Below, one piece after another: positions 1,408 through 63,700 of a stretch of DNA of 64,000 nt (positions are counted from its first letter, which is position 1; each line of letters starts with the position of its first letter). This stretch comes from Cyanophora paradoxa CCMP329. Taxonomy: Eukaryota; Plantae; Glaucophyta. The DNA is taken from positions 434,001 to 498,000 of the forward strand of contig QPMI01000017.1 of assembly GCA_004431415.1 (NCBI GenBank), given 5' to 3'. The notes below the pieces were generated by a model that saw nothing but the letters and a program-made list of their open reading frames with translations, ran no database searches and had not been told where the DNA came from. Both the position numbers and the translations under genes were made by a program.

Positions 1408-1408
1408 C

Positions 1409-8315: not shown

Positions 8316-11075
8316 ATGGCGGAGGGCGCACAGGCGCAGGCGCGCCCGCAGACCTATGTCGTGTACGACAGAGCGATGCTGGCGCAAGCCGAGGTGAGCG
8401 ACCGCGCCGCCGCCGATCGGCGACCGCTGTCCCGACCGCCGACTGCGGCGAGGGCGCTGCTCCCGAAGAAAGCCCTGACTCCCGTACGTGCTCTGCGTCT
8501 TCAGGTCTCGTCCGACTGCGAGAACAAGCGCCGGTGCGCACTGCCCGGGCGCTACCCACGCCGCCCTTCGCTCTGCGGGGATCTGACGAAGGCCTGCGGC
8601 GGCGGGGCTGGCAGGTACTCGTCGCTCTTGAACCAGCTGCAAGCCAGCGGCCTCGTGAACGTGGTGGAGCGCCTCCCGAGTCGCCTGGCGACCCGCGAGG
8701 AAATCCGTTGCGTGGGCCCCGCCAGCGCTCCCGCGCCGCGCGCCTCAACGCCGCCGCAGTGCTCGTTCACGAGGAGCAGTACGTCGACGAGGTCTGGGGC
8801 TTCTCTGAGTGCGCCATCCCCGCACCCTTCACCATCCGCGAATTCGGTCGCGGGTCTCACCGCCCCGCCCGCCCGCGCCGCGCAGGTACCTGGTGAGCTT
8901 GATCGCCGGATCAGAGCGCGCGGCTCGGCGCCCCCCGGGCGACGAAGTCGGGCCGACAGGCGCCCAACCTAATTTGACCCGCCGCGCAGAACAAGCACAA
9001 GCACGCGATCCTCGCGGCGCCGAACGCGACCCGCGACGACCGCGACAAGAAGCGCGCGCTGATCCAGACCCACGAGGAGGACAAGCGAGTGAAGCTCGGA
9101 AAGTGCGCACGCGCCGTCCCGCCACCGGCCGGCCGCCGCCTCGCGTGAAGCGCCGACCCCGCCCGCAGGATGCGCCGCGACAACTACACGCCGTTCGCAG
9201 AGGGGACGACAGAGTCCGCGCGGTGCGCCGAGCGCCGCCCCGCGTGCCATGGGCGCGGCTCGAGCGGCGGGCGGGCGGGCGGGCCGGGGGCGCAGGTACG
9301 CGGCCGGCTGCACGATCCAGGCGGTCGAGCAGGTGGTGCGGAGCGTCGCCCCCGCCAACGGCGTCGCCTTCGTCCGGCCCCCCGGCCACCACGCCAAGGC
9401 CGACTCCGCAGGGTCCGCCCCGCCCCGCCCCTCCGCGCCCCGCCCCGCAGGCCGCGCCCCGGGCGACCGAGCGCCACGGCCGGCGGCCCCCCGCAGGGGC
9501 TTCTGCATCTTCAACAACGTGGCGATCGCGGCGGCGTACGCGCGGCGGGAGCTGGGCGTGCGCCGCGTGCTGATCGTCGACTGGGACGTGCACGCCGCCG
9601 ACGGCACCGCCGAGCTCGTCGCCCAAGATGAGGGCATCATGCTCATCTCCGTCCACCGGTCCGCCCCTGCCCCCCCCCACTCTCCGCCCCCGCCTCCGCC
9701 GGCCCGCCGGGCGCCGCTTACGGGGGGCGCGAAGGTACGACTACACGGGGTTCTACCCCGGCGGGGCCGACACCTACTACAACGGCGTCCACGGCGCCGT
9801 CCGCCCCGCGCCCCGCCGCCCCTCCCCCCCGCGCGACCGGCCCCGCGCCGACGCGAGGCGGCAGGCGAAGGGGCGCGTGGTGCACATCCCGCTGTGCCAG
9901 CACTCGCAGGACTCGTCTCCCGAGGTGCAGGAGGCCGAGTTCAAGCGGGCGGCCGAGGAGACGGAGCGCAAGAAGCAGGCCGTCCTCGCCGCCCGCGCCG
10001 CCGCCGAGGCCGAGGCCGCCCGCCTCGTGGCGGAGGCCAAGGGCGGGGCCCCCGGGGAGGCGGCGGCGGAGGGCGGCGGCGCCCCGCCCCAGGAGGCCAT
10101 CGGCGCCAAGCGCAAGACGCCCCCGCCGCCCTCCGTCGAGGTAAAGCAGGAGCCGGGCGCCGCCGCCGCCGCCGGGGCCGGCGACGGCCCCGCCCGCCGG
10201 CCGCCCACCGCGCCAGCGACATCGCCACGTGCGCCCGCGCCGCGGACCCCTCGCCGCCCCCGCACGCCGAGGCTCAGCGCCGGGCGCGACAGGGTGCCGG
10301 CGAACGACGCGATGGAGACCTCATCGAGCGGCTCCGACGGCGAGACCGAGGCCGCCAAGCGGCGCGCCCCGCCCGCGCCCCACGCCCCGCGCCCCGCCCC
10401 GCCGCGGGCGCTGAGGGGAGGGGGCGCGCAGGCCGCCGCCCAAGTACATCCTGCCCTTCGGCGACGACTGCTACGAGATGGTCTTCGACGAGCTGGCGCG
10501 CGGCTTACCCCACCACCCTCCCTTGCACCCCCCGGCAGACGCGGCGGGGCCGGGCGGGCAGGTGCTGCCGATGGCGCGCAAGTTCGCCCCGGAGCTCGTC
10601 GTCGTCTCCGGCGGCTTCGACGCCGCCTCGGGGGACCCCCTCGTGCGCGCCTTCCTTCGGCCCTCGCCCTCCTCTTCCGACGCGGGGGCGGCGCGCAGGG
10701 CGGGCTGCTCGTGAGCCCCGCCGGCTTCGCGGCGATGACGCGGCGCCTCATGACCCTCGCCGACGGCCGCGTCGTCATCGTCACCGAGGGCGGGCGCGCA
10801 CCCCCGCCCCGCCCCGCCCTGCCCCGCTCCGCTGAGCTCTGGCGGGCAGGTACGAGCCGTACGTGTTCGCGTCGTGCGCGATCGCGTGCCTGCGGGAGCT
10901 CGTGGGCGCACCCAACCCCGCCCTCGCCGAGACCCGCCGCATGATCGGCCTCCTCCGGTGCCCCCGCCCCGCCCCGCCCCGCCCCGCCCCGCCCCGCCCC
11001 GCCCCGCCCCGCCCCGCCCCGTCTCATTGCTCGCTCCGCGCCCGCAGCGACTACCACTCCGAGCTCCTCGAGTAG
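8316..11075 (+). CDS. Class II histone deacetylase family protein (multi-exon)
   Basis: Motifs RLATREEILLVH, RPPGHHA, GFCIFNNVAIAA, IVDWDVH, LISVHR, FYPG, PELVVVSGGFDAASGDPLGG and EGGY are assembled across introns. One frame ambiguity near 10190-10215. Confidence 0.93.
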
Positions 11076-11348
11076 GGAGGGGCCGGGGACCCGGCGCCGG
11101 CGCCCGCCGTTTTTTGCCCTACGTATACGTATACCCGAACCGCCCCTCCTCCTGCATGTGCATACCCCTGAGTGAACTTTTTCCCTGCTGCATCGTCCCG
11201 AGGCCGGCGGCACGCGAGGGGCGCGCCGAGACAGAGGACGGCTGCGTTGAAATTACACGCGGGGCGGGCCCCCGAGGGGAGGGGGCGGCGCCCGCGCCCG
11301 GGGCAGAAAGCGAGCGAGCGGGGCCTAGCAAACTATAGCTAGCTGTGG

Positions 11349-12862
11349 CTACACGAAGGGGGCCGGGGAGGCGGCGGGCCGGGGCCGGACGGTCTCCCGG
11401 GGCGCCACGTAGTCCTTCGGGATCCAGTTCCGCATGTTGTCTGCGCCCGGCCGCGAACGTCAGGACGGCGGGGGCTCGAGGGGCGGGGGGCGGGGGGCGC
11501 GCACAGACGGTGGGGGTGGGGGAGGAGAGGGCGGAGGGGGCCTGGGAGAGGAGCTTGCGGGCGGCCTCGGTCTGGTACGTCCACTCCGAGCTCTCGTAGA
11601 AGCGCGAGTTGTCGAGGGGCGAGAAGAAGTCGGAGATGCGGCGGGGCTTGGCCGGCTCCAGCCAGCCCCGGTGCTTCGGAAGCACCATGTCGTGGTCCTC
11701 GGGGAGGGGTACGAGCTTGCGCGGCCGGGGCACGATCGTCTTGGGACCGATGGGCGGTAGGAGCACCAGGTAGTCCTCGTCGTCCAGCATCCCCTGCACC
11801 TCCGCCGTGCTCACCCGCCCGCCCCCCGTCGCCGTCGCGGTGGCGCCCAGCGCCGGCGTGCTCCGCATGCGCGAGAGGCCGGGCGCGCCCGGCTGGCCGT
11901 GGAGCGCCGGCGTGCTCGAGGCGCGCCCGAGGCCGGCGGAGGGCGGCGGCGGGGCCTGCTGGGCCGCCTGCAGGGCGCGGGCGAGCTGCGCCATGGCGCC
12001 CTCCGCGGCGGCCTGCCGGTCGGCCATCATCGCCGCCACCAGCTCGTCCATGCGCCGCTCCAGGCTCTCCGCCGTCGCCGGCGGCCGCGAGCCGCCCGTC
12101 GCCGGCGGCCGGGAGCCGGCGGTGGGGGCGGGCGGGAGCCGGCGGTGGCGGGCGGGCGCTCGGACTCGCGCCGCGAGGCTCCTGTCGCGGGCGGCCGCGA
12201 GGATCCGGTCTTCGGCGGCTGCCGCGCCCCTCTGCCGGCGGGAGGGCGAGGGTTCGGGGGTCGGGGGCGGGGCTGCGGGGCGCGGGCGGGGCGGCGGGGC
12301 GCACGGCCTGGGCGCGCGGAGGGGGCTCGCGTCCTCCAGGCGCTTGTTCAGCTCGAGGTCGTCCCGGATGTGGTCCGTCCGCGCCGCCTCGATCAGCATC
12401 CGCTGCGCGCGGCGGCTGAGCGGCGAGCCGGGCCGCTTCCTGCGGGCGGGGCGCACCGTGCCGGCGCCGCCTGCGTCCCGGAAGTCCGCTTGCTTCAGCT
12501 TGTCCAAGAACTGCGGCCCGCGGCGCGGCGATCGGATTTCGGCCCCTGCGCCAAGCTCGGGAGCTGGCAGCCGCCAGGTGCACCTGCTTTGAGAAGGGGC
12601 TGTCCACGCCGTACCGCTCGGCATACTTGGTGTACCACTTCAGCTTAGTTCTGCAGCGGGGTCCGCACGCTTAGCTATAGCAGTTAAAGACGGCCCGAGG
12701 TCGCGGGCGCACCTCTTCTCTGAGGATACCTGGTCTTTCCAGGCTAGCATGCTTTGGAGCTGTGATAGCGTTCAATGGCGAGAAAGCTAGCCGGGCGCCG
12801 CAAGCGCGGTGAGACCGGCGATTCAAGCGCACCCAATCCTGGGCTCCTCCATCGACCCCCAT
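11349..12862 (-). CDS. Hypothetical protein, possibly ciliary; head-to-head with PRP8
   Basis: Spliced model MGVDGGAQDW|LQSMLAWKDQVSSEKR|TKLKWYTKYAERYGVDSPFSKQ|FLDKLK... ending ...PTVY|NMRNWIPKDYVAPRE...FV*. Exon joins stay in frame at GT-AG sites. Confidence 0.65.
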
Positions 12863-13022
12863 CTCCTCGCAGCGTCTATCAGGTCTCTTTTCTATTGATG
12901 CGGCAGCTGGGATCGGCTGGGTTGGGTTGCTGTATTTCGGTTCGTCTGGGTACAGGCTTCACGCCGGGATCGCCGTACTCCGGTTCGGCCGAGCGAGGGC
13001 GAAAAAGCGCTCGCTAGGCGCG
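12863..13022. promoter_or_regulatory. Putative bidirectional promoter (hypothetical gene / PRP8)
   Basis: Only 160 bp separate the divergent ATGs. Confidence 0.6.
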
Positions 13023-22125
<9,103 letters not shown>

Positions 22126-22534: not shown

Positions 22535-24840
22535 CTAAGAGCTGGACGGGTAGCTGTTTGAAGCGGATGCCGAGGTCGGCAGCGAGGCGCCCCAGGGCCA
22601 AGGGGGCCAGGGCGAGTCCTCGTCCCAGAGCTCGCGATCGCTGGCGCTAGCGCTAGCGCTGCCGCTGGCGCCGCCGGAGGCGTCGCCGCCGCTCCCGCCG
22701 CTGCCGTCGACGTCACTGCCGGCCGAGGGGGCGCTGAGGGGCGGCGGGGCCGCCAGGAGGTTAGGCGACGCGTCCGCTGATGCGGGGAAGAAGGACGACA
22801 TCTCGTGCGCCACGGCGGCCCTGCGCGGCGCTCAGCGGCGGCAGGCAGAGCGCGGGGCGCAGAGCCGGCGCAGGCGCACCGGATCATTTCTCGGATGACA
22901 GAGGGCTCGAGCAGGGGGCCGGCTGCGAGGGGCGGCTGCTGCGACGGCGGGATCGGGGGCATGGTGCGCGGTTCGGGAACGCTGGCGGGCGCCGCGGCCG
23001 GAGCCTTGCGAGGCGGGAGGGCCGGGGCGAGGCCCGGGATTTGGGGGACGGGGGCCAAGGGTGCTGGAGCGGCAGGCGCGGCGGCGGGGGCGCGGGGCTC
23101 GGCAGGGCCCGCCGCGAGGCCCGGTGCAGGCGCCGGTGCGAGAGGCGGCGCTCTGGGCGGAGCTAAAGGTGCAAGGAAGGCTGTGGCGATGTCCGCAGGA
23201 GGGGGAGCGGCGGGGGCGGCCGCGGGGAAGCGTTGCGAGAGCTCTGCAGGCTGAGACGGTGGTCTCGCTTGCGGAGCTGAAGCACGCGCCGCGCGCTGGC
23301 CGATGCTCGACCCTGGGGCGGCGGCGGGGCGTGGAGGTGGGCCGTGGGCGGGGCCCGGCGCGCAGGCAGGGCCCCGAGAGGCGCCGGGCGGGGGACCGCG
23401 GGCGTGGCCAATCGCCGGTCCGGCCGCGGGTGCGGGGTGGAGGCCGTGCAAGGAGCGGGCCGGGGGGTACGGAAAGGGAGCAGGAGCGGGGGCGGGCCCG
23501 GGTGGGGGGATGAAGACGACGCTCGAGTTGGAGGGGTACGCAAACGCGGGAGGGGCGTGCTTGGGAGCTGCCGCGGGGCGGGGCGGGGCTTGCATGCGGT
23601 ACCCCAGGACGGCCTCAGAGAGCGCGGGGGCGGCGGCCTCCAGGAACCGCCAGCCCGCCACGATCTGGCTCGGCGACAGCACCGCGTGCACCTGCGGCGC
23701 GAAGCGCGTGAGGGGCGCTCTCGGCCCTGGCCCCCGGCGCAAGAGCGCACAGCTGGGGTGAACTCCTCGTTGAACCACGCCATGTCCTCTGCGAGGGTCG
23801 CCCCCGCCGCCTGCGCATCGCCCACCATCCCTGCAACGACTGAGCTTTGCGGGGGCAGCGTCGCCGGGTCCTTTGCACCGCGGAGGCTCTTGATGTCATC
23901 GGCGAGGCGGCCGAGGCGCTCGGCGTTCGGCTCGATCTTGCGGATCAGGATGTCGCTCTGCGCCGGGTGGAGGTTTTGGTGCAGCGGCCCGTCCGACTCG
24001 TTGATCGCCCGCAGCAGCGGGTCCGTCGGGTCTGCTCGGGGCGCGCGCGCGCGTCGGTCTCGCTGCGGGAGCGGTGGGGGCGGAGGGAGCGCACTGGCGC
24101 CCGTGCGCTTGAGGTGCATCCACGTGAGGAGGTACCATATGTGCACTTCCTGCGCCGGCGCGTCTGGAGGCTGCCGCCCGCGGCTGAGCAACCCAAAGAC
24201 GCGCACAATTTTCGTGACTGAAGGGAGGATGACAGGTAGCTGCGCGGGCGCCCGTCAGCCGAAACGCGGGCGGGGAACGCCGCGATGCGCGCGCCTCCGA
24301 GATAGCCTGAATGGCGTTCGCGTGCATCTCCTTTCGCACTGTCGGCAAGTTTAGGCGCAACCGAAACATCAGACTTGCGCAGCCGCGGGGGGCGGATGAT
24401 GTGTAGCGCACGGCTCAACACGTTGTTAATCGACGCGGCGGCAAGGTAAGGCATATTGTGATGTATCGCCTCGCGCGCGCGATGATACTCTTCGGAAGTG
24501 ACCTGTGACAGATGTGCCATCAGGTCAGACCGGATTGGAGCTCTCGGAGACTCGCGGACGTGGGAGAATTCGGACTGACCGCTGCCAGGTTCGCCTTCTG
24601 AACGCGTTCGCGCAGCTCTTCGAGCTCCTGCCGCAGCTGCACGTTCTCCACCTGGAAATGCTCGCAGAGCATCTTCTTCTTCGCTCTGCACTTCCTCGTA
24701 GCCGCGCGCCATCGCTCTTTGCGCTCCTCCTGCAGCTGATCATGATCCTCCGGATCCTCAAGCTCTTTTGCCGCGTCGAGCTCCGCGTGGCTCACGCCAT
24801 CGGCTGCGATCCCGCGCTCGCTCGCCAAATTGATCATCAT
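22535..24840 (-). CDS. bZIP transcription factor, paralog A (bZIP, helical domain, Pro-rich tail)
   Basis: ERKERWRAATRKCRAKKKMLCEHFQVENVQLRQELEELRERV gives a basic region plus zipper. Exon structure is colinear with paralog B. Start codon is tentative. Confidence 0.8.
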
Positions 24841-25347: not shown

Positions 25348-27739
25348 CTACAAGCTGCCAGTGCCGAGGTCGAGGGGCGGCTGGCCATAGGCGGGGGGAG
25401 TTCGGAGGCGCCCCAGCGACTGCAACAGTACCCCGGCGCCGGCCCCGCCGAGGTCGACGCCGACGTCTAGGTCGAGGTCGATGGCCATGGGGAGCTCGAG
25501 AGGAAGCTTCCCCGCGGCCGGCGCATCGAATGCCGCCTCCGGATCCGGTCCGAGGCCCGCCGCGGCGAGCAGCGCCTCTGGCGTCGCGGGGGCGAACCAG
25601 GCACCCGCGGGGTCGATGAGCGGCGAGCCACCGGCGCCCCAGCTAGCGCTGCCGCTCCCGCCGCTGCCCTCGCTGCCGGGCGAGAGGGCGTCCACGGGCA
25701 GCGGGGGGGCCAGGAAGTCCCACGACGGCGCGGCCGGCACGGGGAAGAAGGACGACATCTCGTGCGCCACGGCGGCCCTGCGCGGCGCTCAGCGGCGGCA
25801 GGCAGAGCGCGGGGCGCAGAGCCGGCGCAGGCGCACCGGATCATCTCTCGAATCTCGTCGGGGTCCGGCGGCGGGCCAGCTTCGGGCGGCGGCGGCTGCG
25901 ACGGCGGGGTCGGGGGGATGATGTGCTGTTCGGGGATGCTGCGGGGCGCCGCGGCCGGGGCCTTCCGAGGCGGGAGGGGCGGGGCGAGGCCCGGAAATGG
26001 CATGACGGGGACGGAGGGTGCAGGCGCGGCGGCGGGGGCACGAGGCTCGGAATGGGACTTCGCAGCGGGTGCTGCGCGAGGCGGGGCCCAGAGGGGGATG
26101 GGCGGGTCGGCGGCGAGAGCGGCGGCGGGGGAGGGCCGCGGGGCCTGCGCGCTCTGCGGCTGCGCCCTCGACCCGCCGCTCGCGCCCGCGGCCAGTCGCG
26201 GGCTGATCTCCGCCCTTGGCGCTGCGCCAAGGGCCGGGGTAGGGGGCGGCGGGCCGGACGGGAGCCGGGGGCCTCCGGAGGGGGGCGGGGCGGCGCCCAG
26301 GGCGCCCAGGGCGGGGCCGGGGTCGGCGCCGGGAAAGGCTGGAAGGGGGTACGCGCGGGACATGGGGAGGGGCGGTGCGGAGGCGGGGGCGGGCCCGAGG
26401 GAAGGGACGAACGCGAGGGTCGGGGTGGCGTGGGGGGGCGCGGACGAGGAGGGCTCGGGGGGGGAGGCCCCCGGGGGCGGGAAGGGGCCCGGGAGGCGGT
26501 AGCCGAGGACGGCCTGCTGGAGGGCGGGGGCGGCGGCCTCCAGGAAGCGCCAGCCCTGGGCCACCTGGCCCGGCTCCAGCGTCGCGTTCAGCTGCGGGGC
26601 GCCCGCGCGTCAGGGCCCCGCGGGGGGCGGGGGACGGCCCCCGCGCCCCGCACGCGCGCACCGCCGGCATGAAGTCATCGTCGAACCACGCCACGTCCTC
26701 CGCAAGCGTCGCCCCCGCCGCCCGCATCTCTTCCACCATCTCTGCCCAGCCGTGAGCCTCCGCAGAAGGGGGGGGGGGGGGGGGGGGGGGCCGAGCGACG
26801 CACCGCGGAGGCTCTGGGCGTCGGCCGCGAGGCGGCCAAGGCGGACGATGTGTGCCTCGATGTGGCGCAGGACGGTCTCCCGCTGCACCGCGTCCAGGTT
26901 CTGGTGCAGCGGCCCGTCCGACTCGTTGATCGCCCGCAGCAGCGGGTCCGTCGGGTCTGCTCGGGGGGCGCGCGCGCGTCGGCATCGCTGCGGGAGCGGT
27001 GGGGGCGGAGGGCGAGCGCGCACTGGCGCCGGAGCGCTTGATGCGGAGCCAGGTGGTCATGAACCAGACGCGGACTTCCTGCGCGCCCCCGCTCGCCGGC
27101 CGCAGCCTGCAGGCGGGCCCGGGCCGCGGCGCGCACGATTTGGGCGACCGCGGGGAGGATTTGGGAGAGCTGCGCGCACGGGCGGCTGTCAGCAGGGACG
27201 CGGGAGGGGCGGTCGCCGGGCCGCGCGCCTCCGAGACTGCGCGGCCGGCGCTCGCGTGCATCTCCTTTCGAACTAGCGGCGAGATTGGAGCGTCAGGCGC
27301 GTACTCTGCGGCCTCGGGGGGGAGGGCTCAAGGCGCACGGCTCATCACTTTGTTGATCGTCGTTGCGGAGAGGGTGCTCTGCTGTAACAGCTCGCTCGCG
27401 CGCTGCTTCAGCTGGGATTCCCCAGAAGAAAGCTGCGAAAGGCCGCCGAATGTAAGTCAGGGCCCCGGGGGTGTTGGGATTCGGACTGACCGCTGCCAGG
27501 TTCGCCTTCTGAACGCGCTCGCGCAGCTCTTCGAGCTCCTGTCGCAGCTGCACATTCTCCACCCGTAGGTGCTCGTGAATCATCTTCTTCTTCGCCCTGC
27601 ACTTTTTCGCAGCCTCCCTCGAACGCGCTTTGCGCTCCTCCTCCTCGTCCAGTTCCGATTCGGCCGTGGGTGCCGCGGCGACATCGTTGGTCTCAAATGC
27701 GTCCCTTAGCAACGCAGAGTCGTCGTGTACGTGCAGCAT
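25348..27739 (-). CDS. bZIP transcription factor, paralog B
   Basis: EEERKARSREAAKKCRAKKKMIHEHLRVENVQLRQELEELRERV. Shares PTDPLLRAINESDGPLHQNL, GATLAED.AWF, GWRFLEAAAPAL and AHEMSSFFP with paralog A. Apparent frameshift in a poly-G run at ~26768-26790. Confidence 0.82.
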
Positions 27740-31206: not shown

Positions 31207-32087
31207 ATGAAGATCGACGAGCCGCTGTCGCCGTGGTTCCAGTTCTGGCGGCTCTTCCTCATCGGGACCTCCGTCTGTGAGGTGGCCCTCTTCTTCGCGT
31301 CGGTCGGGCGCGACGCGTGGGTCCTCGCCGGCGTCTCGGGCCCCTTCCACAGCGAGGACGTCCGCGCCGGCGTGCTCATCACCACCAAAACGCTCGGCGC
31401 CTTCCACGTCGGCAGCGACGAGTACTGCGACGCCCTCAACCGCTGCTCCGAGGCCGACCACTCGCTCTTCGGGGCGCGCGCGGCGCTGCTCGTGATCACG
31501 GGCATGTTCGGCGTGGCGAACCTCCTCGCGGAGATCTCCAAGCTCTGCGTCTCGCCCTACCGCACCGCGTTCTACCAGAAGATGTCCGCCATGGCGCTCG
31601 CCCCCCGCGTCGCCTTCAGCCTCTCCAGCTCCGTCATGCTCCTCCTCTGGGTCCGCCCCCTCTCCTCGTTTCAACTGGGCGGCTCCTGTGTGACGCGCGG
31701 CGCCGCTCGCAGGTTCCCGCCGCGATGAACGCCTGGCAGTACCGCGGGGTGTCCGTCACGCCCAAGCCCGGTCCGCCCTCCTCCCGGCTCGGCGGCCCCC
31801 GAGCCTCCGCACGCAGCCGCCCCCCTCTGACGCGGGCGGCGGCAGGCCCGTCCTACTGGATGCAGTGCGCGGCGAACCTCCTCTCGACGCTCTCGCTGCT
31901 CTTCTCGATCGGGACGATCCGGATGAAGCCGACGCGGGCGCTGCGCATCCACCCGGGCGCCGACCACGAGGACGCGCACCACGCCGACCTCCACAAGGCC
32001 CCCGCCGCCCCCGCGTCGCCCCCGGCCTCGCCGCCGCTCGGGCCGGCCGCGGCGCCGGGCGGCGGCGTCCCCCCGCAGATCGGCTAG
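31207..32087 (+). CDS. Four-TM claudin/PMP22-like membrane protein (3 exons)
   Basis: TM1 followed by W, an extracellular loop with two Cys (YCDALNRC), TM2-TM3, and 'PGPSYW' before TM4, matching claudin-superfamily topology. Confidence 0.6.
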
Positions 32088-32353
32088 CGGCCGGGGCAGC
32101 TAGAGCTGCGCAGGCCAGGTTATTGTTATTTATTTGAGCCTATTTCAATTACCGCAGTACTTGTACATGTCCAGGCGCTAGCACTGGTTTGCTGTTTGCG
32201 CGGAGCTCAAGGGGGTAGAAGATTCTGGCGGTTTACTTGCGCATGCGAGGATTCTAGCTACAACAAGCTGACGAGCTTGATCAGCCTCCAGGCACAGCGC
32301 ACGACGCAACACTGTGTGCCAGGCCGTGCTAGGCTAGCCGAGATCATCGCAGC

Positions 32354-45300: not shown

Positions 45301-47608
45301 CACGCCCGGCGGCCCGTTGCGATCTTGCAGGGCTGATCGCGAGGGCAGCGGCGGCGGCGGCGGGGTCGACCGCGCGTACGACGGCGAGCGCTTCGAGTGC
45401 GCGTTTCTGGCAGGGAGCTGCTCTCTGCATTTTTCAGAAACGCAGGGCGCAGCATGCTGCTGGCCGAGTCGCACTGCGGCCGCTTCCGCGTGGTCGGCAA
45501 GGTCTTTGCAATTGGTGCTCGGCACACTGTAAAAATGTTGTTTGCCGTCTCCAACGAGGGCAACCGCGGTGCGACATCCCCCGCCGGCGCCCGCGGCTGC
45601 CCTTTTTCTTTACTGCCCTCAATCCCGCTCGCAGTGCTCGCGTACGTTGGGCTTGGAGCTCACGATCAGCAATGCGCGATCGAGGCCGTTGCGGGCAGCC
45701 CGGAGGTGCCCGCATGCATATGTGTGCGATTCGGGATTGTGTCTCACCGAAAAGCGCGGCGCGGCAGGTCGCACGAGTGATTGTCTGCCGTGACATTAAA
45801 ACCGCTGTACCTGAGGCGAGCCGCGCTGGGCATGCGCCCGCATGCATATGGCGGCACTGCAGCGTGACCCCGCGCGCAGGCCTACGAAGTCAACCCGGAG
45901 CGACTGGGAAGTGAGGTGGAGAAGACTCGGCACGGGACGCTCCTATACAAGCTGGGCGGCGAAAGCAACGAGGTTTGCGACAAGGCTCGGGAGGAGGCGT
46001 GGGAATACGCCTGCCGCGTCGGCCGCCGCTGGGCGCGCTACATGGGCGTCCTCAAAGGGTCCGCACGCGGCTGCCCCGGCCCTGCGTGTACGCGGAGCCT
46101 AATATCTATTCTCAGGCACGTCTCGGACATCTGGGCGGGGCGCTTCGTGGAAGGGGGCGAAAAGTTCCTCTCCTACGACTGCCGGGAGCTCCGCCTCTGG
46201 GACCTCGCCCTCCTCGTGCGTCAACGCGGTCCGGCGCCGGCGCCGTCGCCGCCCGCTCGCGCGCGCCTCCCGCGACGCCCGCGGCCGCGGCCGCCGTCCG
46301 CAGGAAGAGGACGACGAGAAGAAAGACATGGAAGCCGGCGACGCAATCGGCTTCTTCCAATTCAACGAGTACCTATTCGCGCAGCTCACCGCCGCGGCCC
46401 CCTTCTTCGCGCCGGCCGCCGCCAAGCTCAAGGCCAGCGCCGCAGCAGCTCCGGATCCGGGCCTAAATCTAGATCTAGAGCCTCTGGTCGCGTCCCTGCG
46501 CGCGGAGGGCGTACTCTCCGTCGTGCGGCGCCCCGCGGGGGGCGAGCTCAAGGCAAACTCGTCATCGTACCAGGGGCCGCAAATATTTGAGGGCGGGTCC
46601 AACACCCGCAGAAGCGGCCTCGCTGCCCTCGTCGGCACCGCCAAGCTCGACGCGACTTACTTCATCGCCGCCTGTGCCATCGACATCACTGGAGCCAAGG
46701 TTGTGCCCGTGGACGAAGAAGAAGTCGGCGAAGTCTACGTGCGCGCCGGGCTGGCGTACTGGTTCTGGCCGATGTGGCCTTGCTATCAGACGGCGGTCGC
46801 CGCGTCGCCCGGCGTCGGCCCTCTCTGCGTCATCTCGGACTTCCTGGAGGCCTTCCTCGGCTGCGAGGACGGCAGCGTCCACGCCTGCATCCTCATGAAG
46901 GGCCAGCACATTCAGAAAATCAGCCGCCGGGCCTCCTGGTTCCACGCGGGGCCCGTCGTCGCGATCGCCACGTCGGCGTCGGACCCGCGGGCGGCGGGCG
47001 CGGCGAGCCACATCCACGCCGCGTCGCTCTCCCTCGACGGCACTCTCATCCTCGCGACTCTCCCCGCCGCGCCCGCCGTTGGCTGCAGCGCCGCCCTCGT
47101 CGACCGCTTCCCGCTGGCGGCGGGGGCCCCGGCGCCCTCGCTCGTGGCCCTGGCAGAGGCCGCGGGTCCCGCCCCGCCGCCCCTCGCCGTCGCCTGCGGC
47201 TGCGACGTGCTCCTCTACACGCCGGCGGCGCGCGGCGGTTTCGAGAAGCGGCTCCTCCGCTCGCACGGCGGAACCGTGCGCGCAGTCGCATTCACGGCGG
47301 GCGGCCGCATTGTTTCCCTTGCGGAGGACGGTAGCGCGCGCGTGTGGGAGGCCGTGACGGGCCGCCTCGTCTACAAGCTCGGCTTCTGGAAGACCGACGC
47401 GTGGTCCGCCGCCGCCTTTGACGGCGTTTCACGGTGCCCTGCCTGCACATATATATGCATGCATCACACGACACAACGTGCCGAGCGTGACGCCGCGGGC
47501 AGGTCGGGCGCCAACGCGGTCCGGGTGGGTACCAAGTGTTTGCAAGTTGACATCTTCGACATCGTCTCGCTAGACTCGGTGGTGAGACTCGATCAATATC
47601 ACTCGTAG
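39362..47608 (+). CDS. NWD1/2- or TEP1-like STAND NTPase: DUF4062-like N-terminal domain, NACHT/AAA, WD40 repeats
   Basis: VRVFFSSTFSDMEQER, VDMRWGV, ICSEEVARC and GQKYGYRPIP (DUF4062/NWD N-terminus). Walker A GGSGTGKSS (~41653), GRFCGTTP, Walker B LYILIDAVDQL, TPLYLR, ELEDVLSCDDAVL, WFHRQF. WD repeats (VVLWDA, LRLWDL, SHGGTVRAVAF...ARVWE). The 3' end is uncertain. Confidence 0.88.
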
Positions 47609-47666
47609 CATATCTTCTTGCTTTTTATTGTTATGTTTTTATTAAATGTTTACGCTCGCACTGCGC

Positions 47667-52953: not shown

Positions 52954-55900
52954 CTACTTGCGGAGGGAGGAGAGGGGCTGGCCGCGCGGGGAGGACTGGG
53001 AGGAGCCGCGGACGGAGCCGGCGGGGGAGTGGCCGTGGGAGGAGGAGGAGGCGTCGCCGGCGGCGGCCGGCTTGAGCATGAGGAGGTCGATGGCGTACTC
53101 GCAGGGGAGGGCGGCGAGGGGCTCGAGGGCGATCACGAGGTCCTTCTGGGTCTGGGCGTGCATGGCGGGGGCCCACTCGTCGTAGAGGCAGGCGAGCACG
53201 GGCTGCGCCGCCCCGAAGAGGTCGCGGAAGGAGGCGTGGAGGCCCCGGCAGTTGAGGGCCGCCCGCAGGAACGAGTGGAACTTGGCGTCTTTGAGGCCCC
53301 ACGCCGAGGCGGCGCGCGCCACGGCGTACGAGCCCGGGTTGATCCGCGCGTTCGCCTCCACGGCGGTGTAGAGGAAGGTGGGGAGCGGGCGCGAGTCCTC
53401 GGGGTCCTGCAGCGGGTTCGCCGCCGCGAAGGCCTCGAAGGCGTCCCAGAGGTGGTACCCCTCGCTGCTGCTCCCGAAGCTGAAGAAGCCGGTCTTCTGC
53501 TTCTTGGCGCCCTTGGCGAAGAGGTCGACGAGGGCGTTGGCGAGGGCGCGCAGGTCGGCGCGCGTCGCGTCCTCCTCGGGGCCGGCCCGCTGCGCGGCGG
53601 CCGAGGCGAAGGCGGCGACGGCGTCGGCGACCTCGCGGACGTGCACGTTGCGCGAGGCGAGCGAGGCGACGGCGCGCTGGAGGGCCATCGGGCCCTCCCC
53701 GCCCCGCGACGGCGTCGACCGCATCGAGGCCAGCGACGAGGGCGGCGAGACGGCGGCCGGGCCGCCCGAGCCGGCGCGGCCGGCGGCGCCGGCGGCGGAG
53801 CGGGCGTCGCCCTGGGCGTCCTCCTCGGCATCGGCGTCGGCGGCGGCGCCGGAGCGCTCCTCGAGCTCGTCGATCCGCCAGAGGGCGTCCTCGAGCTCGG
53901 CGAGGATCTTGCGGTTCAGCTCGTCCACCCGCAGCTTGTCCGTCTCTTGCGCCGCGATCAGCCGCTCCAGCCGCTTGATCGAGAGCGCCGCCCGCGAGAG
54001 CTCGTCGATCACCCCCGCGATGCGCCGGTCCGACGTCTCCTCCTCCCGGCTCAGGTCCTTGCGCAGCTTCTCCTGCTGCGAGGCCAGCGCGTCGATGCGG
54101 GCGCGCAGCTGGGCCAGGTCCAGCGGCGAGCCGGGGCCGCTGAGCGCCATGACCGCGTCCCCTCCCTCGAGCTGCGCGACCACCGGATCGGAGGGGGCGG
54201 GCGGGGGCGGGAGGACGCGGAGACGCACGCGGGAGGCGACGGCGCGGAGGCGGGAGGGGGCCTCGTCGACGAGGGCGCGCTGGGCGCGGGCGTTCTCCTC
54301 CAGGGCCGCCACCCGCTGCTGGATCCCCGCGAGCGCCTCCTCGACCGAGCGCCCGGCGGCGGCCCCGACCTCGTGCGCGCGCGCTTGGATCGCCTGCTCG
54401 ATCAGCTCCGTCAGGCCGCTCAGCATGCCCCGCTGCCGCTCCGCAAGGTCCACGAGCTGCGCGCGCGGGGTCAGCCCGGGGCGGGGCGGGGCGGGGCGAC
54501 GCAGGAGAAGGACGGGGCGGCCGCTCGCCTTGGCCTCCAGGGAGTCGAGGGCGGCGGCGGGGATCTGCATCGACTCCTCGAGCCGCGCCACGCGCGCCGC
54601 GCTCGCCTCCTCCGCCTCGACGGCGCCGCGCGCGAGCTCGAGCACGTGCTTCTTGACCCCGTCGATCTCCGCCGCCGCCGCGCTGCCGTGCTCCTCCAGC
54701 GCCTTCTGCAGCTGCTTCTTCGCCTGCTCGAGGGCCGCCGTATGGACGGCCGCCATCGCGGCCGAGGCCTCCGAGGCCCGCGCCTGCTCGCTCCGGGCCA
54801 CCTCGATCGCCCGCTCCAGCGCCTCGATGCGGGCGCGCGCCGCGCCGGCCTCCTCCGCCGCCCGCTGCGCCGCCGCCGTCGCCCGCGCCGCCTCCTCCGA
54901 GTCGACCCGCTGCCGCAGGTGCTCCCGCAGCTCCAGAAGCGTCTGCTCCACCGCCGCCAGCCGCCGCTCCTGCCCCCGCCGCCCGCTCGCACCGGCGCGC
55001 CGCGGCAGCGAAGGCGCGTGCGGCGCACCCGCTCGTAGAGCGCCGACGAGCGCTCCTCCATCGCGGAGCGCATCGCCGCCAGCTCGGCGTCGACTCTCCT
55101 CGCCTCGTCCGCCGCGCGCGCCTCCATGCCCTCCACCTGCCGCCCCGCGTCGGGCGCGACCCCGGAGCGCGGCACGGGCGCAGCGGACCCGGCGGAGGGC
55201 CCTCGTGGCGGTCGTGATCGCTGTGGACGGGAGTGTGTCCTGCCGCATGGTGCGGATCTCGCTTTGGAGGTGCGAGACCGTCTCCTGGAGCACCCGCAGC
55301 GTTTCCTGCCGCGCGCATGAGGCGCGGACGCGCGAGGCGCGTTTCGAGAGCGATCGAACCTCGCTCACGGAGACATCGGAGCCCTGGGCGGCGTCCTTGT
55401 CGTTGCTCCAGGGCAGAGGGGTCGGCCGGTCGCCCTCCGCCTGGTCTTCGGCGGCACATCCGGGGAGGAAGAACGACCAGAAACTCTTCTCTTTGGGAGC
55501 CGGCGGCGCCCGCACGATGTTCGCCCGCTTCGGCGGGGTAGACCTGGTTTGACAGTCAGCGGCGCGGCGGGCCGGCCGGCGCGGCGGGCGACGAACGTTG
55601 TATTCGACGAGCTTCCTGCATCGATATCTGCGCGAAAAAAATGAGCCGCCGCGGACGAGCAGCGCGTAGGCCACAGAAGCGGGCGGCCGGTCGACCCGGC
55701 TCGCGCTAACGAAACCCGCCGAGACGTCTCCGAAGCCCCGAAAAGCATATCGTACCTTCGCAGTCAAGCTCGTACTCTACATCGGGCCGCCAGCTGAAGC
55801 TCGAGAACGCATCGCGCATCACGGTGAGCCGCACGCCGGGCTGAGAGATGTCGTGCACATAGTTGGCCGACTTGATTTTGTAGCGGCACTTCTCTTCCCA

Positions 55901-56032
55901 ATGCGACAGCTCGCTGATGCGCAGCCGAACTTGGCCCGGAACGCCGCGAACGGTGAAGGACAGCGGAATCATCGCCGCCGAGTCCTGCTGCGGCGTCATA
56001 GCCGTCGGTTGCATCAGCGGTGCGGCCAGCAT
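52954..56032 (-). CDS. Coiled-coil protein with a C-terminal RUN domain
   Basis: Long heptad-rich region, then 'ALANALVDLFAKG...LWDAF...AKFHSFLRAALNCRGL...LYDEWA...LEPLAALPCEY', consistent with the RUN blocks. Confidence 0.78.
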
Positions 56033-56129
56033 CGCTGCTAGCTGCGCTGCTCCGCCCGGCAAGCGGCTAGGCTGATGCTCTTGTTCCGAGTCGACGTCGC
56101 CGCTTCTTCTGCCAGTTGGCGTGGCTCAG

Positions 56130-56500
56130 TTTGGGGTACGCGTACGCTAGCGCTTATAGCGCTTATATATGTGTGTATCAGTGGTTCACAAAATTTCACT
56201 TTCTTATTGCATGCATGCATGCATGCATGCGCATACATGCATGATAGAAACACGATAAATTAAATCAGAAATGTGAATAAATTAGCGTTCAAATCTTACT
56301 TTTAAGCTATATGTATATATATATGTTTAAGAAGCGTAATATTATAATTCGAATTCGATCAGGCTGCATGACTAGTACGTACTAGCTAAAGCTACTACTA
56401 GCTACTAGAGCAGTCAAGTTGCAAGCACCTCCTTCGAGGCTTCGAATTCGACGCCTTTAATTCGAATTCGAAGCTTAAGCTTCGTTCGCGCGCGCACGAG
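56130..56500. repeat. AT-rich tract of chained short palindromes
   Basis: TGCATGCATGCATGCATGC, TAGTACGTACTAG, TTCGAATTCGAAGCTTAAGCTTCG, GTACGCGTAC. Confidence 0.8.
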
Positions 56501-57104
56501 CCGCAGTGCCGCGCGCGCGCGTCCGCCGGGCCGCCTCGCGATCGATCGCCGCTCAGCCAGCCTCAGCGACGCTCACCGCGCCGGCGGCGGGCCGACCGAC
56601 GCTCATGATCACTGATCAGTGGCGACACTGGCGAGTCACTGGCGACTCACAGGCGAATCAGCGGCCAGCTGCAGTGCTGGGCTGTCTGGCCCACTCAGTC
56701 CGGGCCTACTGACCCAGTGGGCGACACACTGGGAGTCACCCGCCCCAGTACTAGTGCCAGTGGCCCGGCCCGAATCGCGGGCGAAAGTTCCCGGGACCTG
56801 CAAGTTGCGAACCGACTCATCATGATCGTATGCATGATCAGCCGATCGCGAGTCGCAACTCGCGATCGAGGGGCCCGGGGGATCCAAGGGAGCCGCGGTG
56901 CCGAGTACGTGCTGCCTCGCATCGCCCCCCGAGTCCCGACGTATGCGGCGGTATGCCGCACGGTATGCGCATGCCCTCCGACTCGGGCTCCGAGTCTCCG
57001 GCGCCTTCGTTCGCGGCCGCGGGCAGCGTGCGCGCGGAACTCGAAAGTTGGCTGAGCTGCAAAATTGCACAAAGGAGAGAAATAGGAGATCGGGGGCGCG
57101 GCGC

Positions 57105-60100
57105 CTAGTCGTCCTCGCCGGAGGACGAGAGCACGACCTGCAGGGGGGCGCGCGGGGGGTCAGAAGGGGCCGGGGACGGGCGCGGGGGGCGCGGGGCGGG
57201 GCGCGGGCGCGCCTTGTAGTCGAAGGGGGTGAACTTGTAGCCGTCGCCCATGTAGAACTTGTTCATGAACTCTGCGGGCGGGCGCCGGGCGTGAGGCGGG
57301 GCCGGGCGGGGCGCGGGGCGCTAGGCGGGGGGCGGGGTAGCCGTGGGGCCGCCCCAGGGGCCGACCCCGGGGCTGAGTGGCGGGGGGACGGCGGCGCACC
57401 GACCCAGTGGAGGCGGAGGGCGTGGAGGAAGGCGGAGAGGGACTCCATGACGCAGAGGACCATCATGGTGGCGCCGGCCCACACGGCGAAGGCCACCCAG
57501 ATGAAGATGGGGCCCATCGAGCCACCGTCCCCCGCCGCCCCGAACCCGAAGCCCAGCACGCGCTCCCAGAACACTGCGCGGCCGGCACGCGCAGGCGCAG
57601 GCGCTCAGCGCGCCGCGGCGGGGTGCGCGGGGTGCGCGGGGCGGGGCCGGGGCGGGGCGGACCCTCGGAGAGCTCGGCGTGGGCGAGGGAGAGGGCCCAG
57701 AGGCGGAGGTAGGAGGCGGTGTTGGAGATGGCGCCGAGCACGAACTCGATGGTGTGGATCATCTGGTGGATCATGATCTCCCCAAAGTTGAACTCGCCGT
57801 GCCCGTGTCCGTCCCCGTGGCCGCCGCCCGGCTGGATGAGGCCGAGCTTGACGGCCTTCTCGTACTCCTTCTTGATGAGGAGGGGCTTGGGGAGGAGCAT
57901 CCAGGGGATGGCGACGACGGCGGCGAGGACGAGGACGACCTGGAGGAGGGCCTGGCCCGGGCCCGTCTCCCCCGACTCGAAGAGCGGCTCGTTGACCGTG
58001 CCGATGGTGAGGAACATGGAGATCATCGTGTGGATCAAATCCGGCGGCTGGCGCAGCGTGCCGAACCAGTCGGTGCACCACTTGACGACGATCATGAGGA
58101 CCATGTAGCCGAAGAGGCAGTTCATGAAGATCATCTGGGGGATGAACTCGTAGAGGATGTTCTTGCGGAGGCGGAAGAACTTGTCGTTGAAGTACTTGAA
58201 AATGATCCCCGTCACCATCTGCGTGATCCCGAAGATCACCGAGAGCTTCATCTTGTACGAGTTCACGAAGGGGAGCTTGTTCATGCAGCCCCACCACGCC
58301 TGCGCCGCGCCGGTCAGGGCGCGCCGGAACGGGACGGGGGGCCGGAGGAGAAAAGAAAGAGGAGGTGGGGGGGGGGGGGGGGGGGGTGGGGGGGGGGGGG
58401 CGCACGTAGTCGATGCCGAAGGGGTACGTGTTCTTCCCGATGCGCTCGGCGATGAGCACGTTCTGGCCGGGCTTCGGGTGCTCGGGGAACTTGTAGGAGG
58501 AGTTGAAGATCTTGAGGGGCAGCGAGAAGGTGTCGTTGTAGATGAGGCCCGTGTACATGGCGAAGATCGACATGAGCAGGATGACGTAGCGGCCGCCGAA
58601 GCACATGGAGATGATCTCGTTGATCTGCTTGCCGGCCCACTTCTTCTCGTTGGAGATGAGCCAGAGGGCGAAGAGGAGCATGAGGACCGAGTGGCCCAGG
58701 TCGCCGAACATGACGGCAAAGAGGAAGGGGAAGGTAACCATCGAGAGCACAGCTGCGGCGCGGGGCGGGGCCGGGCGAGCTAAGGAGGGGCGGGGCGGGG
58801 CGCCGAGGAGGGTGCGCGCGCGCGGGCGGACCCGGGTTCAGCTCGCGGTAGCGCGCGATACCGTACGAGTCGACGATGGCCTGGAAGCCCTTGGTGAACT
58901 TGTTGACGCGGAAGTACGTCGGCGGCGTCTCGTGCGTGTTGAGCACGTTGACGATGGAGGGGACCTGCGCCCCGCTGCGCTCCGTCGCCTTGCGCAGAGC
59001 GAGCTGGATCTTGTCGATGGAGGCCTTGGGGGTCCAGCCCTCGGCGATGAGGCACTTGCGGGTGACGTCATAGTTGAAGAGGTTGAGCGAGTGGAAGACG
59101 GCCTTCTCCTTCTTCACCGTGGTCGTCCACGCCTGCAGGTTCGCCGCCATGTTCATCAGCACCGCCGTCCGGTGCGTGCTCGTCCGCTCGATCACCGTCT
59201 CCAGGTCCGCCAGCCGCGACCGGACCTGCCGCCCGGCGCCCGCCCGCTCAGACCCGGCGCGGGCGCGGCGGGGGAAACGCCGTCGTGGGCGGTCACCTGG
59301 TTCATCATCGAGGCCTGCTCGCTCTTGTCCTCGGGGTACGGGTAGCGGTTCGCCGCGAAGGCCTCGCAGATCTTGTTGATCTTGGCCTGCGCGAGGGGCG
59401 TCGGAGGGCGCCGGCTCGTAGTGCACGCCGCGCGAGCCGGACCTGGGCGCGCTCTCCCGAGTAGAAGACGATGAAGACGTTCTTGTTCACCTTGTCGCCC
59501 TGCGCAGCGCCGCGGGTTTGAGCGCGGGGCGGCCGACGGCTGGCGGCGGGGACGGCGGGCGGAGGAGCGGCGCACGGTGTGCGGGTCGGTGATCGGCTCG
59601 TCGATCTCAGAGAAGCGAACGAACATATTGCCGCGAGTCGCGCGGAACTGGCGCGCAACCACAACGGTGAGGCGCGAGCCGAGACGACTGAGGCTAGGGC
59701 GCGGGACGCACCATCACACGCTCGAAGGAGGCGCGCTTGTCGCGCACAATGACACCAGCGATGAAGCTGCACGAGGGGGTAAGGCCGGGCCAAGCGAGCC
59801 GGAGGCGTGGTCGGGCGGACCCGAGGGCGCGGGTAGTGCGCGTTGCGGCGCGCTCCTCCTCGCGTCTGCGCAGCGGAAGGCGCTCCTCGACGTCCTGGTC
59901 GAGCAGGTCGCCCTGGGGAGCCGCGCGGGCCATGGCCGACGCCTGCAGCGCCGGCAGGTCACGGGCCAGCTCGCGCCGAGCAGCCGGCTAGCTGAAATAA
60001 AGGAAGAAGCAAACAGACCTGCTCGAAGAACTGGACGCCCTTCTCCAGCACGTACTTCATCTCGACGAGCTCGTTGTAGTTCCGGTCGAGCATCTCCTTG

Positions 60101-60684
60101 TTCTCGTTCATCTGCTTCAGCTCCTTCTCAAACTCGTCGAACATGACGGTCTGCAAGAACGAAAGCGAGCAACGAGGCGCCGGTGAGCACGGCGCGCGAC
60201 GCGGCATACGAGACGAATCGGTGAAAGGGCGGGGGGGCGCACATCCAGGTCGGCGGCGGTCATGCGCTTCGGCTTCCGCGGAACACGCTCCGGGTCGATG
60301 CCTGCCTTCTCAATTTGCTCCGCCATGAAGCGGAGCTTCCGCTCGATCTCATCGCAGCGTTTGACGTCGTTCGCGAAGTTCCGCTGGAAAGCAGACTTGT
60401 CCGCGTTGAGCTGTGCGACAGCGATGATCAGCTAAACGTCCCTGGCGCCCCGCCCGCTGGCCGCGGGGCCCCCGAAGGTCGTCCGGCCAGCACGCACATC
60501 CTTGAACTGGATGAGGCCCAGATTCCCGAGCTCATCGACGGTATCATGCGCAGCCTCGTTCTGGATGAAGAGCTGAACGAGGGACATCTCCTCGCTGGCC
60601 GCCGGCGGTGAGGCGGGCGATATGTGGGGCGACGGGCAGAACGCGGCGAATTCGCGCTACAAACCTTCGCCATAGGTCACCCAT
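57105..60684 (-). CDS. VHA-a: V-type H+-ATPase V0 subunit a (15 exons)
   Basis: [81 protein letters not shown] (essential Arg), [19 protein letters not shown]. Confidence 0.98.
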
Positions 60685-60784
60685 GGCTGCTTGTCGCACG
60701 CTGCGACAAGCCGAGCGAGTGCCGAGCCGCTTCGAGGGGTACGCCGACAGTTGGCTACGGCAAAATTCCAAACGAGCACAGCCG
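60685..60784. promoter_or_regulatory. Putative bidirectional promoter (V-ATPase a / coiled-coil gene)
   Basis: Only 100 bp separate the divergent ATGs. Confidence 0.6.
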
Positions 60785-63700
60785 ATGGCGGCCGTGCCAG
60801 CGATGGTCGTGACGACCACGGCAGAGGGTGGCGGCAGCGATGCGCCATTCGCAGAGCCCCAAGCGAGCGGGACGGCCAGTGCTGGCCCGCCGCAGAGCAC
60901 AGCCACACAGGGCGACCGGCCTGTGAGCTTAGAATGCTCTATATACCTTCAAGAGCTTAGCTATGACTCGATGGGGGCTTAGCGAGCCCGCACCGCCGCA
61001 CCACTGCAAACCTCGCTGACGCCTCTGCAGCCCCGTCCTCTGAAGATACACATATCGCTCGAGACGTTTGATGATCGGAATCCCAACTCAGGCACCGCCC
61101 CGGCGCACCCCCGCGTCCCCGACGCCGCTTACGACCCTTTCGCAGTCAACATCACAAGCCCGCGATCCAAGGAGGCGTGCTTGCGGCAGGGAATCGAGCC
61201 CACGGAGCTGCTGTACAGGCGCGCCGGAGGCCCGCCCCGCGCCCCGCGGCCGAGCTGAGCGTGCTGTCCAGGCCTATCGAGAGCTTCGCGGAGCGGGGCC
61301 TGGCCCCGGCGCTGCAGCGGCGGCGCTACGACCACTACGAGATCCGGCGGCAGGGTCGGCACCGCTCCCCGGCTCGCGCCTGTGGCGCGAGCGCTGCTGA
61401 CGGCGGGCGCAGCCAAATTGCAGCTGGTGAAGCAGGAGCGGCTGCTGATCATGCAGGAGGCGGAGGAGCAGGAGGCCGAGGAGGCCCGCGAGCCAGAGGA
61501 GGAGCCACTGGCCCTGCCCGCGCCCCCGGCCCGGGCCCCGCCCCCGGCCCCCGCGCCAGCCCCGGCGGCCTCATCGGCGAGCCCGCCGCCGGCGGCGGGG
61601 GCGGGGGACGGGATGCACTCGTACCGGTCGGGGCGGGGCTCGGTGAAGTCGCACAAGTCGGGGGCGAGCGGGACGGCCTCCGTGGCGGACTCGGCGTTCA
61701 TCGCCCGCGAGAAGGACTTCCTCGAGAGGCTCCAGCGCCGCCAGCAGGCCCGCCCCGGCCCCGGCCCCGGCCCCTTTGCACGCCCTCTCACCCCTTCGCT
61801 CGCAGAAAGAAGTCGAGGCGATGGTCGCCTACGAGAAGCACCTCGCAGAGTGCGGCCGGGCCCTCCCCCGCGCCCCCCGCCCCGGCCCGGCCCGGCCCAA
61901 GCGCGCTCCTTTTGCAGGTTGAGGGAGGCGCAGCGGAAGAGAGACGAGGAGAAGCGGCGGCAGGAGGAGGAGCTGGCGAGGGACCGGGCGCGCCGGCAAA
62001 AGGAATGGGAGGAGAAGCGGGTGCGGGAGGGCCGCCTCACGCCGCCGCCGGCGAGCGAGTGACGCGGGGGCGGCAGAGGGAGCGGGACCTGCAGAAGGCG
62101 AAGGAGGCGGAGGAGGAGCAGATCCGGCGGCAGATCCTCGCCCAGGAGAAGTACGAGCAGGAGCGCAAGGAGGCCGAGAAGCGGCGCGCCGAGGAGGAGC
62201 GCCGGCGCCGCGAGGCGCGCAAAGCCGAGGAGGAGAAGGCGCGGGCGGCCGACGAGGCGAAGCGCAAGGCGGAGGCGGCGGCGCTGGCGCAGCGGCGGGA
62301 GGCGGAGGCGCGGCGGCGGGAGATGGAGGAGAAGGAGGAGCGGCGGCGGCAGGCGATCGAGGCGGCGAAGCAGAGGCGGGCGGCGGAGGCGGGGGAGAAG
62401 CGGGCGGAGGCCGAGGCGCGGCTCTTCGACGTGAAGGCGGCGGTGGACGAGACGCTGCGCTCGCAGCGGGAGGCGATCGAGCGGAAGCAGGCGGAGATGG
62501 AGTGGCGGCGGCAGCAGCAGGAGGCGGCGCGGCGCCTCGAGTCGGAGGAGCGGCGCAAGGCGAGCGACAAGTCGCGGCAGGTGGAGGAGGCCGTCGCGCG
62601 CGCCGCGGAGCTCGAGCGGGAGCGCAAGGCGGAGCTGGTGGCGCGGGAGCAGAAGACGCACGAGCGGCTGCGGCAGCTCGCCGTCGAGAAGGAGGCCGAG
62701 GCTCGGGCCCAGCGGCGCGACCTCGAGGCGAAGGAGCGGCAGCGGCGGGAGAAGCTCGAGGCGGCGAAGCGGCGCGAGGCGGAGCGCAAGGCGACGATCG
62801 TGCGGGCGATCGAGGAGGTAGAGGGCGTGCTTGACAAGGCGCGCCTGCAGCAGCGCAAGTCGGCCGAGTTCCGCACGGAGGACCGGCGCCTCCGCATGAT
62901 CGAGAAGGCGGAGAACGTGGAGCGCATGAAGCGCATCGAGGCGTACAAGCGGGAGAAGGCGCTCGAGAAGATCCGGCGGGAGGAGGAGCGGGTGGCGGCG
63001 CTGCGGGAGAAGCAGGCGGAGATGCTGAACCAGCGGAAGCGCTTCCGGGAGGCGAACGCGCTGATCCGGCAGCAGCTGACGGAGGCCGTCGAGAAGCTGC
63101 GCGCCAACAAGAAGCTCGAGAACGCCCCCGAGGAGCTCGCCAAGGTCCTCGCCGTCGCCCGCCGCGGGCCCGACTCGCCGCGCTCCTCCTCCGCCTCCCC
63201 CTCCGCCTCGCCCCCGCCCCGCCCCGCCACCGCCTCCTCCGCCGCCCCGGGCCCCTCCTCCTCCTCCTCCGCCCCCGCGACATCCGTCGCCTCCGCCCCG
63301 CCCACCGCTCCCGCGCCCGGCGGGAAGCCGCGGCGGCCGCTCATCCCGGAGGATGCGGAGGAGGAGGGGGAGCCGGCGGCGGCGGCCGAGCGGGCGCAGT
63401 CGCCCCCGCGGCGCAGCCAGAGCGACCCGGCGCTGCGGTCCCCGGCGGGCGGCCCCGGGGCCTCCTCGGGGGCAGCCTCCATGCGGGGGCCCCGGCCCCG
63501 GCCCGAGGAGGCGACCCCGGCCTCGCCCCGGGACCCGCGCCTGCTCCAGGCGGGGGGCGGCAGCCCCGGGCCGAGCCCCAAGCGGGAGCCCGTCCGCCGC
63601 TACGGCTCCGGCTCGCAGGCCCCGCAGGCGACGGGCCCGGGGGCCGGAGACGGGCCCACCCTCAACCCCTTCTTCACGCAGCGGAAGCCCCTCGAGAAGG

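Follow-up and report, generated by a model that had tools for sequence, protein, structure and literature searches.

The window analysed here is a 64,000-nucleotide stretch of the genome of the glaucophyte Cyanophora paradoxa CCMP329 (contig QPMI01000017.1, positions 434,001 to 498,000 of the forward strand; all coordinates below are those of the window). It carries genes for a class II HDAC (8316..11072, + strand), PRP8 (13023..22125, + strand), a caspase-like protein of the C14 type (33833..37109, - strand), a P-loop STAND-type NTPase (39533..45336, + strand) and V-ATPase subunit a (57105..60690, - strand), and the introns of these genes begin with either GT or GC. In total, 100 GT and 37 GC introns were counted in the window (27% GC). 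The abundance and the uneven spread of GC donors, first noticed in an annotation made by reading the DNA alone (the first-pass annotation), are real and were described there for the most part accurately; the annotation is partly confirmed.

The G+C content of the window is 70% (59 to 76% across 4-kb blocks), and nearly every third codon position of its genes is G or C. The C. paradoxa assembly has a G+C content of 67.6%; its genes contain 9.2 introns on average, and mean intron length is 86 bp (PMC6704402). The public gene models were produced with BRAKER1/AUGUSTUS with RNA-seq input, which supports the use of GC junctions in RNA only indirectly, and the genome paper declares that they need curation and mentions neither GC donors nor GC-AG introns (PMC6704402). 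A literature search found no published report of GC donors in Cyanophora.

Intron structure of the genes

GC dinucleotides are ubiquitous in the window, which makes naive intron calling worthless. When introns were called ab initio with no signal models, or by self-training on such calls, about 70% of all donors came out as GC, including half of those even in PRP8, and the approach was discarded. A trained forward-backward probabilistic caller was therefore built and used to type the introns of genes without a public model. It was trained on 43 validated introns of PRP8 and HDAC, T and C were set as equally probable at donor position +2, and exon positions were excluded from the donor model. 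An intron locus was typed when its summed posterior was at least 0.8, and donors with a posterior of at least 0.9 formed the high-confidence set; for PRP8, HDAC and V-ATPase a, the three validated genes, curated counts were used in the window totals. The trained caller recovers the PRP8 introns and all three GC introns of HDAC.

The HDAC gene has 15 introns, 12 with GT and 3 with GC donors, as established by alignment with its public model (EukProt P0152, tig00000093_g3560.t1), which is 100% identical across all 545 amino acids. The GC-AG introns are 10362..10431 (donor CG/GCGCGC, the slash marking the exon-intron boundary; posterior 0.90), 10496..10561 at DEL/VLP (donor TG/GCGCGC; posterior 1.0) and 10794..10849 (donor GG/GCGCGC), which splits the EGGY motif and does not contain any GT. 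These three coordinate pairs, as given in the first-pass annotation, match the GC-AG introns of the public model one for one, and removal of the introns restores the 545-aa public protein at 100% identity. In the same gene, the segment 9865-10361 (+) is a single exon in the public model; the trained caller proposes one or two introns beyond that model, 10229-10292 (GT) and possibly 10119-10216 (GC), and RRPPTAPATSPRAPAPRTPRRPRTP, part of the translation there, resembles intron read-through.

The PRP8 gene contains the Pfam domains PROCN, U5/U6-binding, JAB and PROCT. Its introns were placed by a protein-to-DNA spliced aligner treating GT and GC as equal, with a full-length PRP8 (P0004, 71% identical) as the reference. 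The alignment yielded 30 introns, 29 of them GT, and the single GC call fell in the weakly conserved N-terminus, where a second reading against the conserved KARKW..KRKFGYV..QKEDM motif gave the GT introns 13044-13133 and 13186-13276. All 30 donors are thus GT (GTGCGC or GTCCGC), which agrees with the earlier claim that the gene lacks GC donors. The gene for V-ATPase subunit a (Pfam V_ATPase_I, E = 4e-80) has 14 introns, 13 GT and 1 GC, again the number claimed at first reading. Its first intron is 60595-60664 (donor GTTTGT), and its sole GC-AG intron is its last, 57138..57212 (- strand; donor AG/GCGCGC; posterior 1.0).

The STAND gene was recognized by two motifs that can be read in its exons, Walker A (GGSGTGKSS) and Walker B (LYILID); exon-by-exon Pfam searches gave only subthreshold matches, to nSTAND1 and AAA_16 at about 0.05 to 0.1. 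The caller places about 29 introns in this gene, 9 to 10 of them GC, 9 to 12 GT and the remainder ambiguous. GC-AG introns were called at 41383..41443 and 41912..41975 (both with donor AG/GCGCGC and posterior 0.99), at 43069..43133 (LGW/FHRQF; donor TG/GCGCGA; posterior 0.85) and directly after Walker B (ILID/AVDQ) at 42077..42139 (posterior 0.65, with a further 0.29 for a GC donor at 42086). The last segment contains a TGA in frame, as had been noted, and has no GT inside or just upstream, so that both candidate donors are GC. The two latter introns had been proposed in the first-pass annotation and were recovered, and a third proposal, 40209-40274 (VVQ/ICSEE), held in part only, since a GT alternative at 40220-40282 competes with it.

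The caspase-like gene was likewise recognized by motifs (VIGVDQY, FSGHG and ILDCCHAG), with a subthreshold match to Peptidase_C14 in one exon only (E = 0.22). It has about 15 introns, 7 to 9 of which were called GC and 2 to 3 GT. Six GC introns have posteriors of at least 0.9, the number roughly expected from the first reading. Among the GC-AG introns of this gene, all on the - strand, are 35014..35069, which splits VIGVDQ/Y (donor AG/GCGCGC; posterior 1.0), 34552..34614, directly before the exon of the catalytic Cys (AG/GCCCGC; 0.98), 35963..36026 (CG/GCGCGC; 0.99) and 36092..36164 (AG/GCGCGC; 0.98).

Spread and context of GC donors

The share of GC donors differs among 16 genes of the window (chi-square p = 1e-4), and the strong gene-to-gene bias described at first pass is borne out by this heterogeneity. 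The GC donors make up 0 of 30 typed introns in PRP8, 1 of 14 in V-ATPase a, 0 to 1 of 6 in the gene at 31207-33392, 1 of 6 in the gene at 5047-7472, 3 of 15 in HDAC, 9 to 10 of 18 to 22 in the STAND gene and 7 to 9 of 9 to 11 in the caspase-like gene. The absence from PRP8 compares with 39% GC elsewhere (p = 4e-7), and the share in V-ATPase a, at most 1 of 14, is also low (p = 0.01). The heterogeneity persists when the length prior is made flat and when the codon model is trained on all genes. Typing by summed posterior gave 89 to 99 GT and 37 to 39 GC loci. A near-ban on GC donors (prior 0.001) cost the caspase-like and STAND genes 35 to 41 log-likelihood units and PRP8 none. Of the typed introns of two unconserved genes, at 5047-7472 and 31207-33392, 10 are GT and 1 is GC, compared with 3 GT and 7 GC in the caspase-like gene (p = 0.008), which indicates that the bias is not merely poor calling in unconserved genes. 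The per-gene GC share varies continuously between 0 and about 70%, and neither clustering of GC donors within genes nor an effect of 5'-3' position in the gene was found in the window.

Among the 18 high-confidence GC donors, 13 have an A at exon position -2 (72%), compared with 18 of 79 GT donors (p = 1e-4). This contrast is sharper than that at position -1, where a G precedes 16 of the 18 GC donors and 49 of the 79 GT donors (62%; p = 0.03). Both exon positions were unused in calling, so that their enrichment vouches for the GC set. It had been stated that every GC donor follows an exonic G; this is mostly so, with two exceptions, one of which, called at 42312-42363, probably represents the GT intron 42304-42352. 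The companion statement that GT donors accept any base at -1 was overstated, since G makes up 62% overall and 79% in PRP8 (22 of 28 donors). The pattern GC(G/C)(C/A)GC fits each of the 18 high-confidence GC donors, which hence lack a U12-type ATCCTT-like box. The GC and GT introns are alike in their G-Y-S-C-G-C donor motif, in their GCAG acceptor and in median length (69 versus 67 nt), and the GC donors are closer to the local consensus than the GT donors because of their AG/ enrichment. A stronger remaining consensus is the known compensation rule for GC 5' splice sites, in the form of an AG/GC pattern (PMC3167603).

Intron cores have similar compositions in both classes, with a G+C content of 0.80 in GT introns and 0.78 in GC introns (81% in PRP8), and C makes up 79 to 80% of core pyrimidines in PRP8, in V-ATPase a and overall. 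Local base composition as the cause of the donor bias is ruled out by this likeness. Since the cores have 80% C among pyrimidines, about 80% of donors would be GC if position +2 were neutral, and the roughly 27% seen indicates that T is favored at +2 in every gene. The scaled advantage of T, as a rough estimate, is 0.5 in the caspase-like gene, 1.6 in STAND, 2.8 in HDAC, 3.9 in V-ATPase a and more than 5 in PRP8. The GC-donor share is not correlated with codon bias, taken as a proxy for expression, across all genes (effective number of codons 28 to 34; G+C at third codon positions [GC3] 0.88 to 0.99). The only respect in which PRP8 and V-ATPase a both stand out is their low content of Ala, Gly, Pro and Arg (22 to 23%, compared with 29 to 44% in other genes), which reflects protein constraint. 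The consensus intron ends, GYGCGC (5') and GCGCAG (3'), are complementary at a fixed register; the two ends of the same intron form 5.72 of 10 pairs compared with 5.81 for shuffled partners, and no covariation was found among the high-confidence introns of the window.

Tandem paralogs, repeats and window margins

Two tandem paralogous genes on the - strand, 22600-24800 and 25500-27700, match no Pfam family and have exon blocks that are 85 to 100% identical. The GC-AG intron 27170..27228 (- strand), found by the caller and by paralog comparison, shares its donor, TCGGAG/GCGCGC, with intron 24240-24294 of the other copy, while the intron bodies have diverged; conservation of a GC donor between diverged introns supports genuine GC-AG introns. 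Most other introns of the pair have also diverged, yet 22821-22879 and 25778-25836 are 100% identical, which suggests recent duplication or gene conversion.

Pentamer repeats of the (GCCCC)n type occur in many introns (e.g., 10958-11047, 15130-15218 and 54457-54528) and are common to unrelated genes and to GT and GC introns alike. An all-against-all blastn comparison of 110 introns revealed no repeated intron family, only simple repeats and the one paralog pair.

The first 4 to 5 kb of the window (1-5000) have a G+C content of 59%, far below that of the rest, and weak coding periodicity. At the other end (61100-64000), both strands carry long open frames and the coding strand is ambiguous; they include a 360-aa exon rich in Glu, Arg and Lys that resembles a coiled coil (62077-63156, + strand) and an 891-aa ORF (61129-63804, - strand).

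A probable mutation-selection balance, its rivals and known systems

The explanation that we favor, and consider probable, is that these are ordinary U2-type GC-AG introns in mutation-selection balance, with the strictness of T retention differing by gene. Very strong GC-biased substitution (GC3 about 0.97; intron cores about 80% G+C) would keep turning the T at donor position +2 into C, and a GC donor would still be spliced if the remaining site fits the local consensus AG/G-C-(G/C)-C-G-C. The change would be only mildly harmful, so that GC donors could accumulate to about 25 to 40% of introns. The caspase-like and STAND genes, at about 45 to 70% GC, retain T weakly, whereas its retention is near-absolute in PRP8 and V-ATPase a. 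The cause would be graded purifying selection on splicing efficiency, with the spliceosome unchanged. The first-pass annotation had proposed relaxed recognition of position +2. That C is tolerated there agrees with the shared motif, length and acceptor of the two intron classes, but the position is not neutral, since T is favored and GC donors carry the extra exonic AG. Its proposal that donor type tracks constraint fits PRP8 and V-ATPase a, but the genes at 5047-7472 and 31207-33392 are GT-rich too, although unconserved.

The GT-rich state of these two genes is one of several points that weigh against a balance set gene by gene. The heterogeneity without PRP8 is only borderline (p = 0.02 to 0.25), and codon bias does not independently point to stronger selection on either PRP8 or V-ATPase a. 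The GC and GT counts of the STAND and caspase-like genes are ab initio inferences from sequence, and 35 to 45 intron loci were untypable at the summed-posterior threshold. An earlier version of the caller made false GC calls in HDAC at 8340 and 8671, and the call at 42312-42363 is probably wrong, since the GT intron 42304-42352 fits better. An Rfam search found no snRNA gene in the window. Finally, the bias looks regional: with PRP8 and V-ATPase a removed, 9 of 45 introns are GC at 5-33 kb (20%), compared with 27 of 48 at 33-64 kb (56%; p = 0.0006).

This last contrast would be expected if a regional effect, such as recombination with biased gene conversion or chromatin, set the GC-donor share, with PRP8 and V-ATPase a as constrained exceptions. 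However, intron cores of the half rich in GC donors have, if anything, a lower C/(C+T) (0.72 to 0.84 versus 0.69 to 0.94), core G+C is alike in GT and GC introns, and V-ATPase a, with its single GC donor, sits within the GC-donor-rich half. A regional cause is unlikely, although gene and regional effects are inseparable on one window.

An extension of the balance would treat the T/C state at +2 as a graded, gene-specific read-out of selection for splicing efficiency, running from the lowest estimated advantage of T, in the caspase-like gene, to the highest, in PRP8. If GC donors were slower, the STAND and caspase-like genes would be held at low or conditional output, an idea that we regard as having only an outside chance.

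It is improbable that intron history accounts for the pattern, with GC donors marking recent gains of introner-like elements in lineage-specific genes and the introns of PRP8 and V-ATPase a being old and GT. Such elements hold 79% of the GC donors in Micromonas pusilla (PMC4815162), but the window has no repeated intron family, the (GCCCC)n-type repeats are found with either donor type in all genes, and GC donors occur at conserved positions of the HDAC domain.

The first-pass annotation had also suggested a possible two-tier splicing code. Under such a code, GC donors would form a deliberately weak class, spliced slowly or conditionally (with intron retention), in defense and death genes, the housekeeping genes being GT only. 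GC donors are indeed most frequent in the STAND NTPase and caspase-like genes and nearly absent from PRP8 and V-ATPase a, and in mammals they are enriched among genes with alternative splicing (PMC2490688). Nevertheless, the per-gene values are continuous, clustering and position effects are absent within genes, GC donors match the local consensus better and not worse than GT donors, and HDAC and unnamed genes carry GC donors too. The code is thus unsupported and quite improbable. A calling artefact, in which ambiguous boundaries in fast-evolving genes land on the commoner GC dinucleotide and inflate the GC share, would be in line with the GC calls made in PRP8 without signal models, with the false GC calls that persist in the trained caller and with an AG/ signal that is weaker in posterior-weighted GC calls than in the high-confidence set, but it is very improbable given the A enrichment at -2, the contrast between the unconserved GT-rich genes and the caspase-like gene, the likelihood cost of banning GC donors and the presence of the HDAC GC introns in the public model.

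High shares of GC donors have precedents in a small number of other GC-rich algae, and a new splicing mechanism is not required. Mutation-selection balance at a single splice-site position would be open to a simple genome-wide test through the uneven spread of GC donors, because the neutral expectation is readable from intron composition. In practice, gene predictors that expect GT-AG introns will mis-model many Cyanophora genes.

Micromonas pusilla CCMP1545 has GC at 25.6% of its donors, and gene predictors limited to GT had overlooked these sites (van Baren et al. 2016, PMC4815162). Like Cyanophora, it is a GC-rich alga with short introns and a high share of GC donors, and its donor context is kept whether the donor is GT or GC. 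In contrast to Micromonas, where most GC donors lie in introner elements, the Cyanophora window is without an intron family, and its GC donors are spread unevenly between genes. Emiliania huxleyi, for which about 50% GC donors are cited in PMC4815162, is a further very GC-rich alga with GC-AG as a major intron class, but it is a haptophyte, from another lineage than Cyanophora. In animals and plants, compensated GC 5' splice sites make up about 1% of introns (PMC3167603, PMC2490688), and in mammals, conversions of GT to GC donors accumulate over evolution (PMC2490688). These sites are U2-type, and the rest of their donor is stronger than that of GT sites, which in Cyanophora takes the form of the AG/ enrichment. 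The frequency in Cyanophora is about 30 times higher, and the consensus is GYSCGC and not GTAAGT, so that compensation is judged against another motif. What the window contributes beyond these known systems is the gene-to-gene contrast together with the AG/ compensation.

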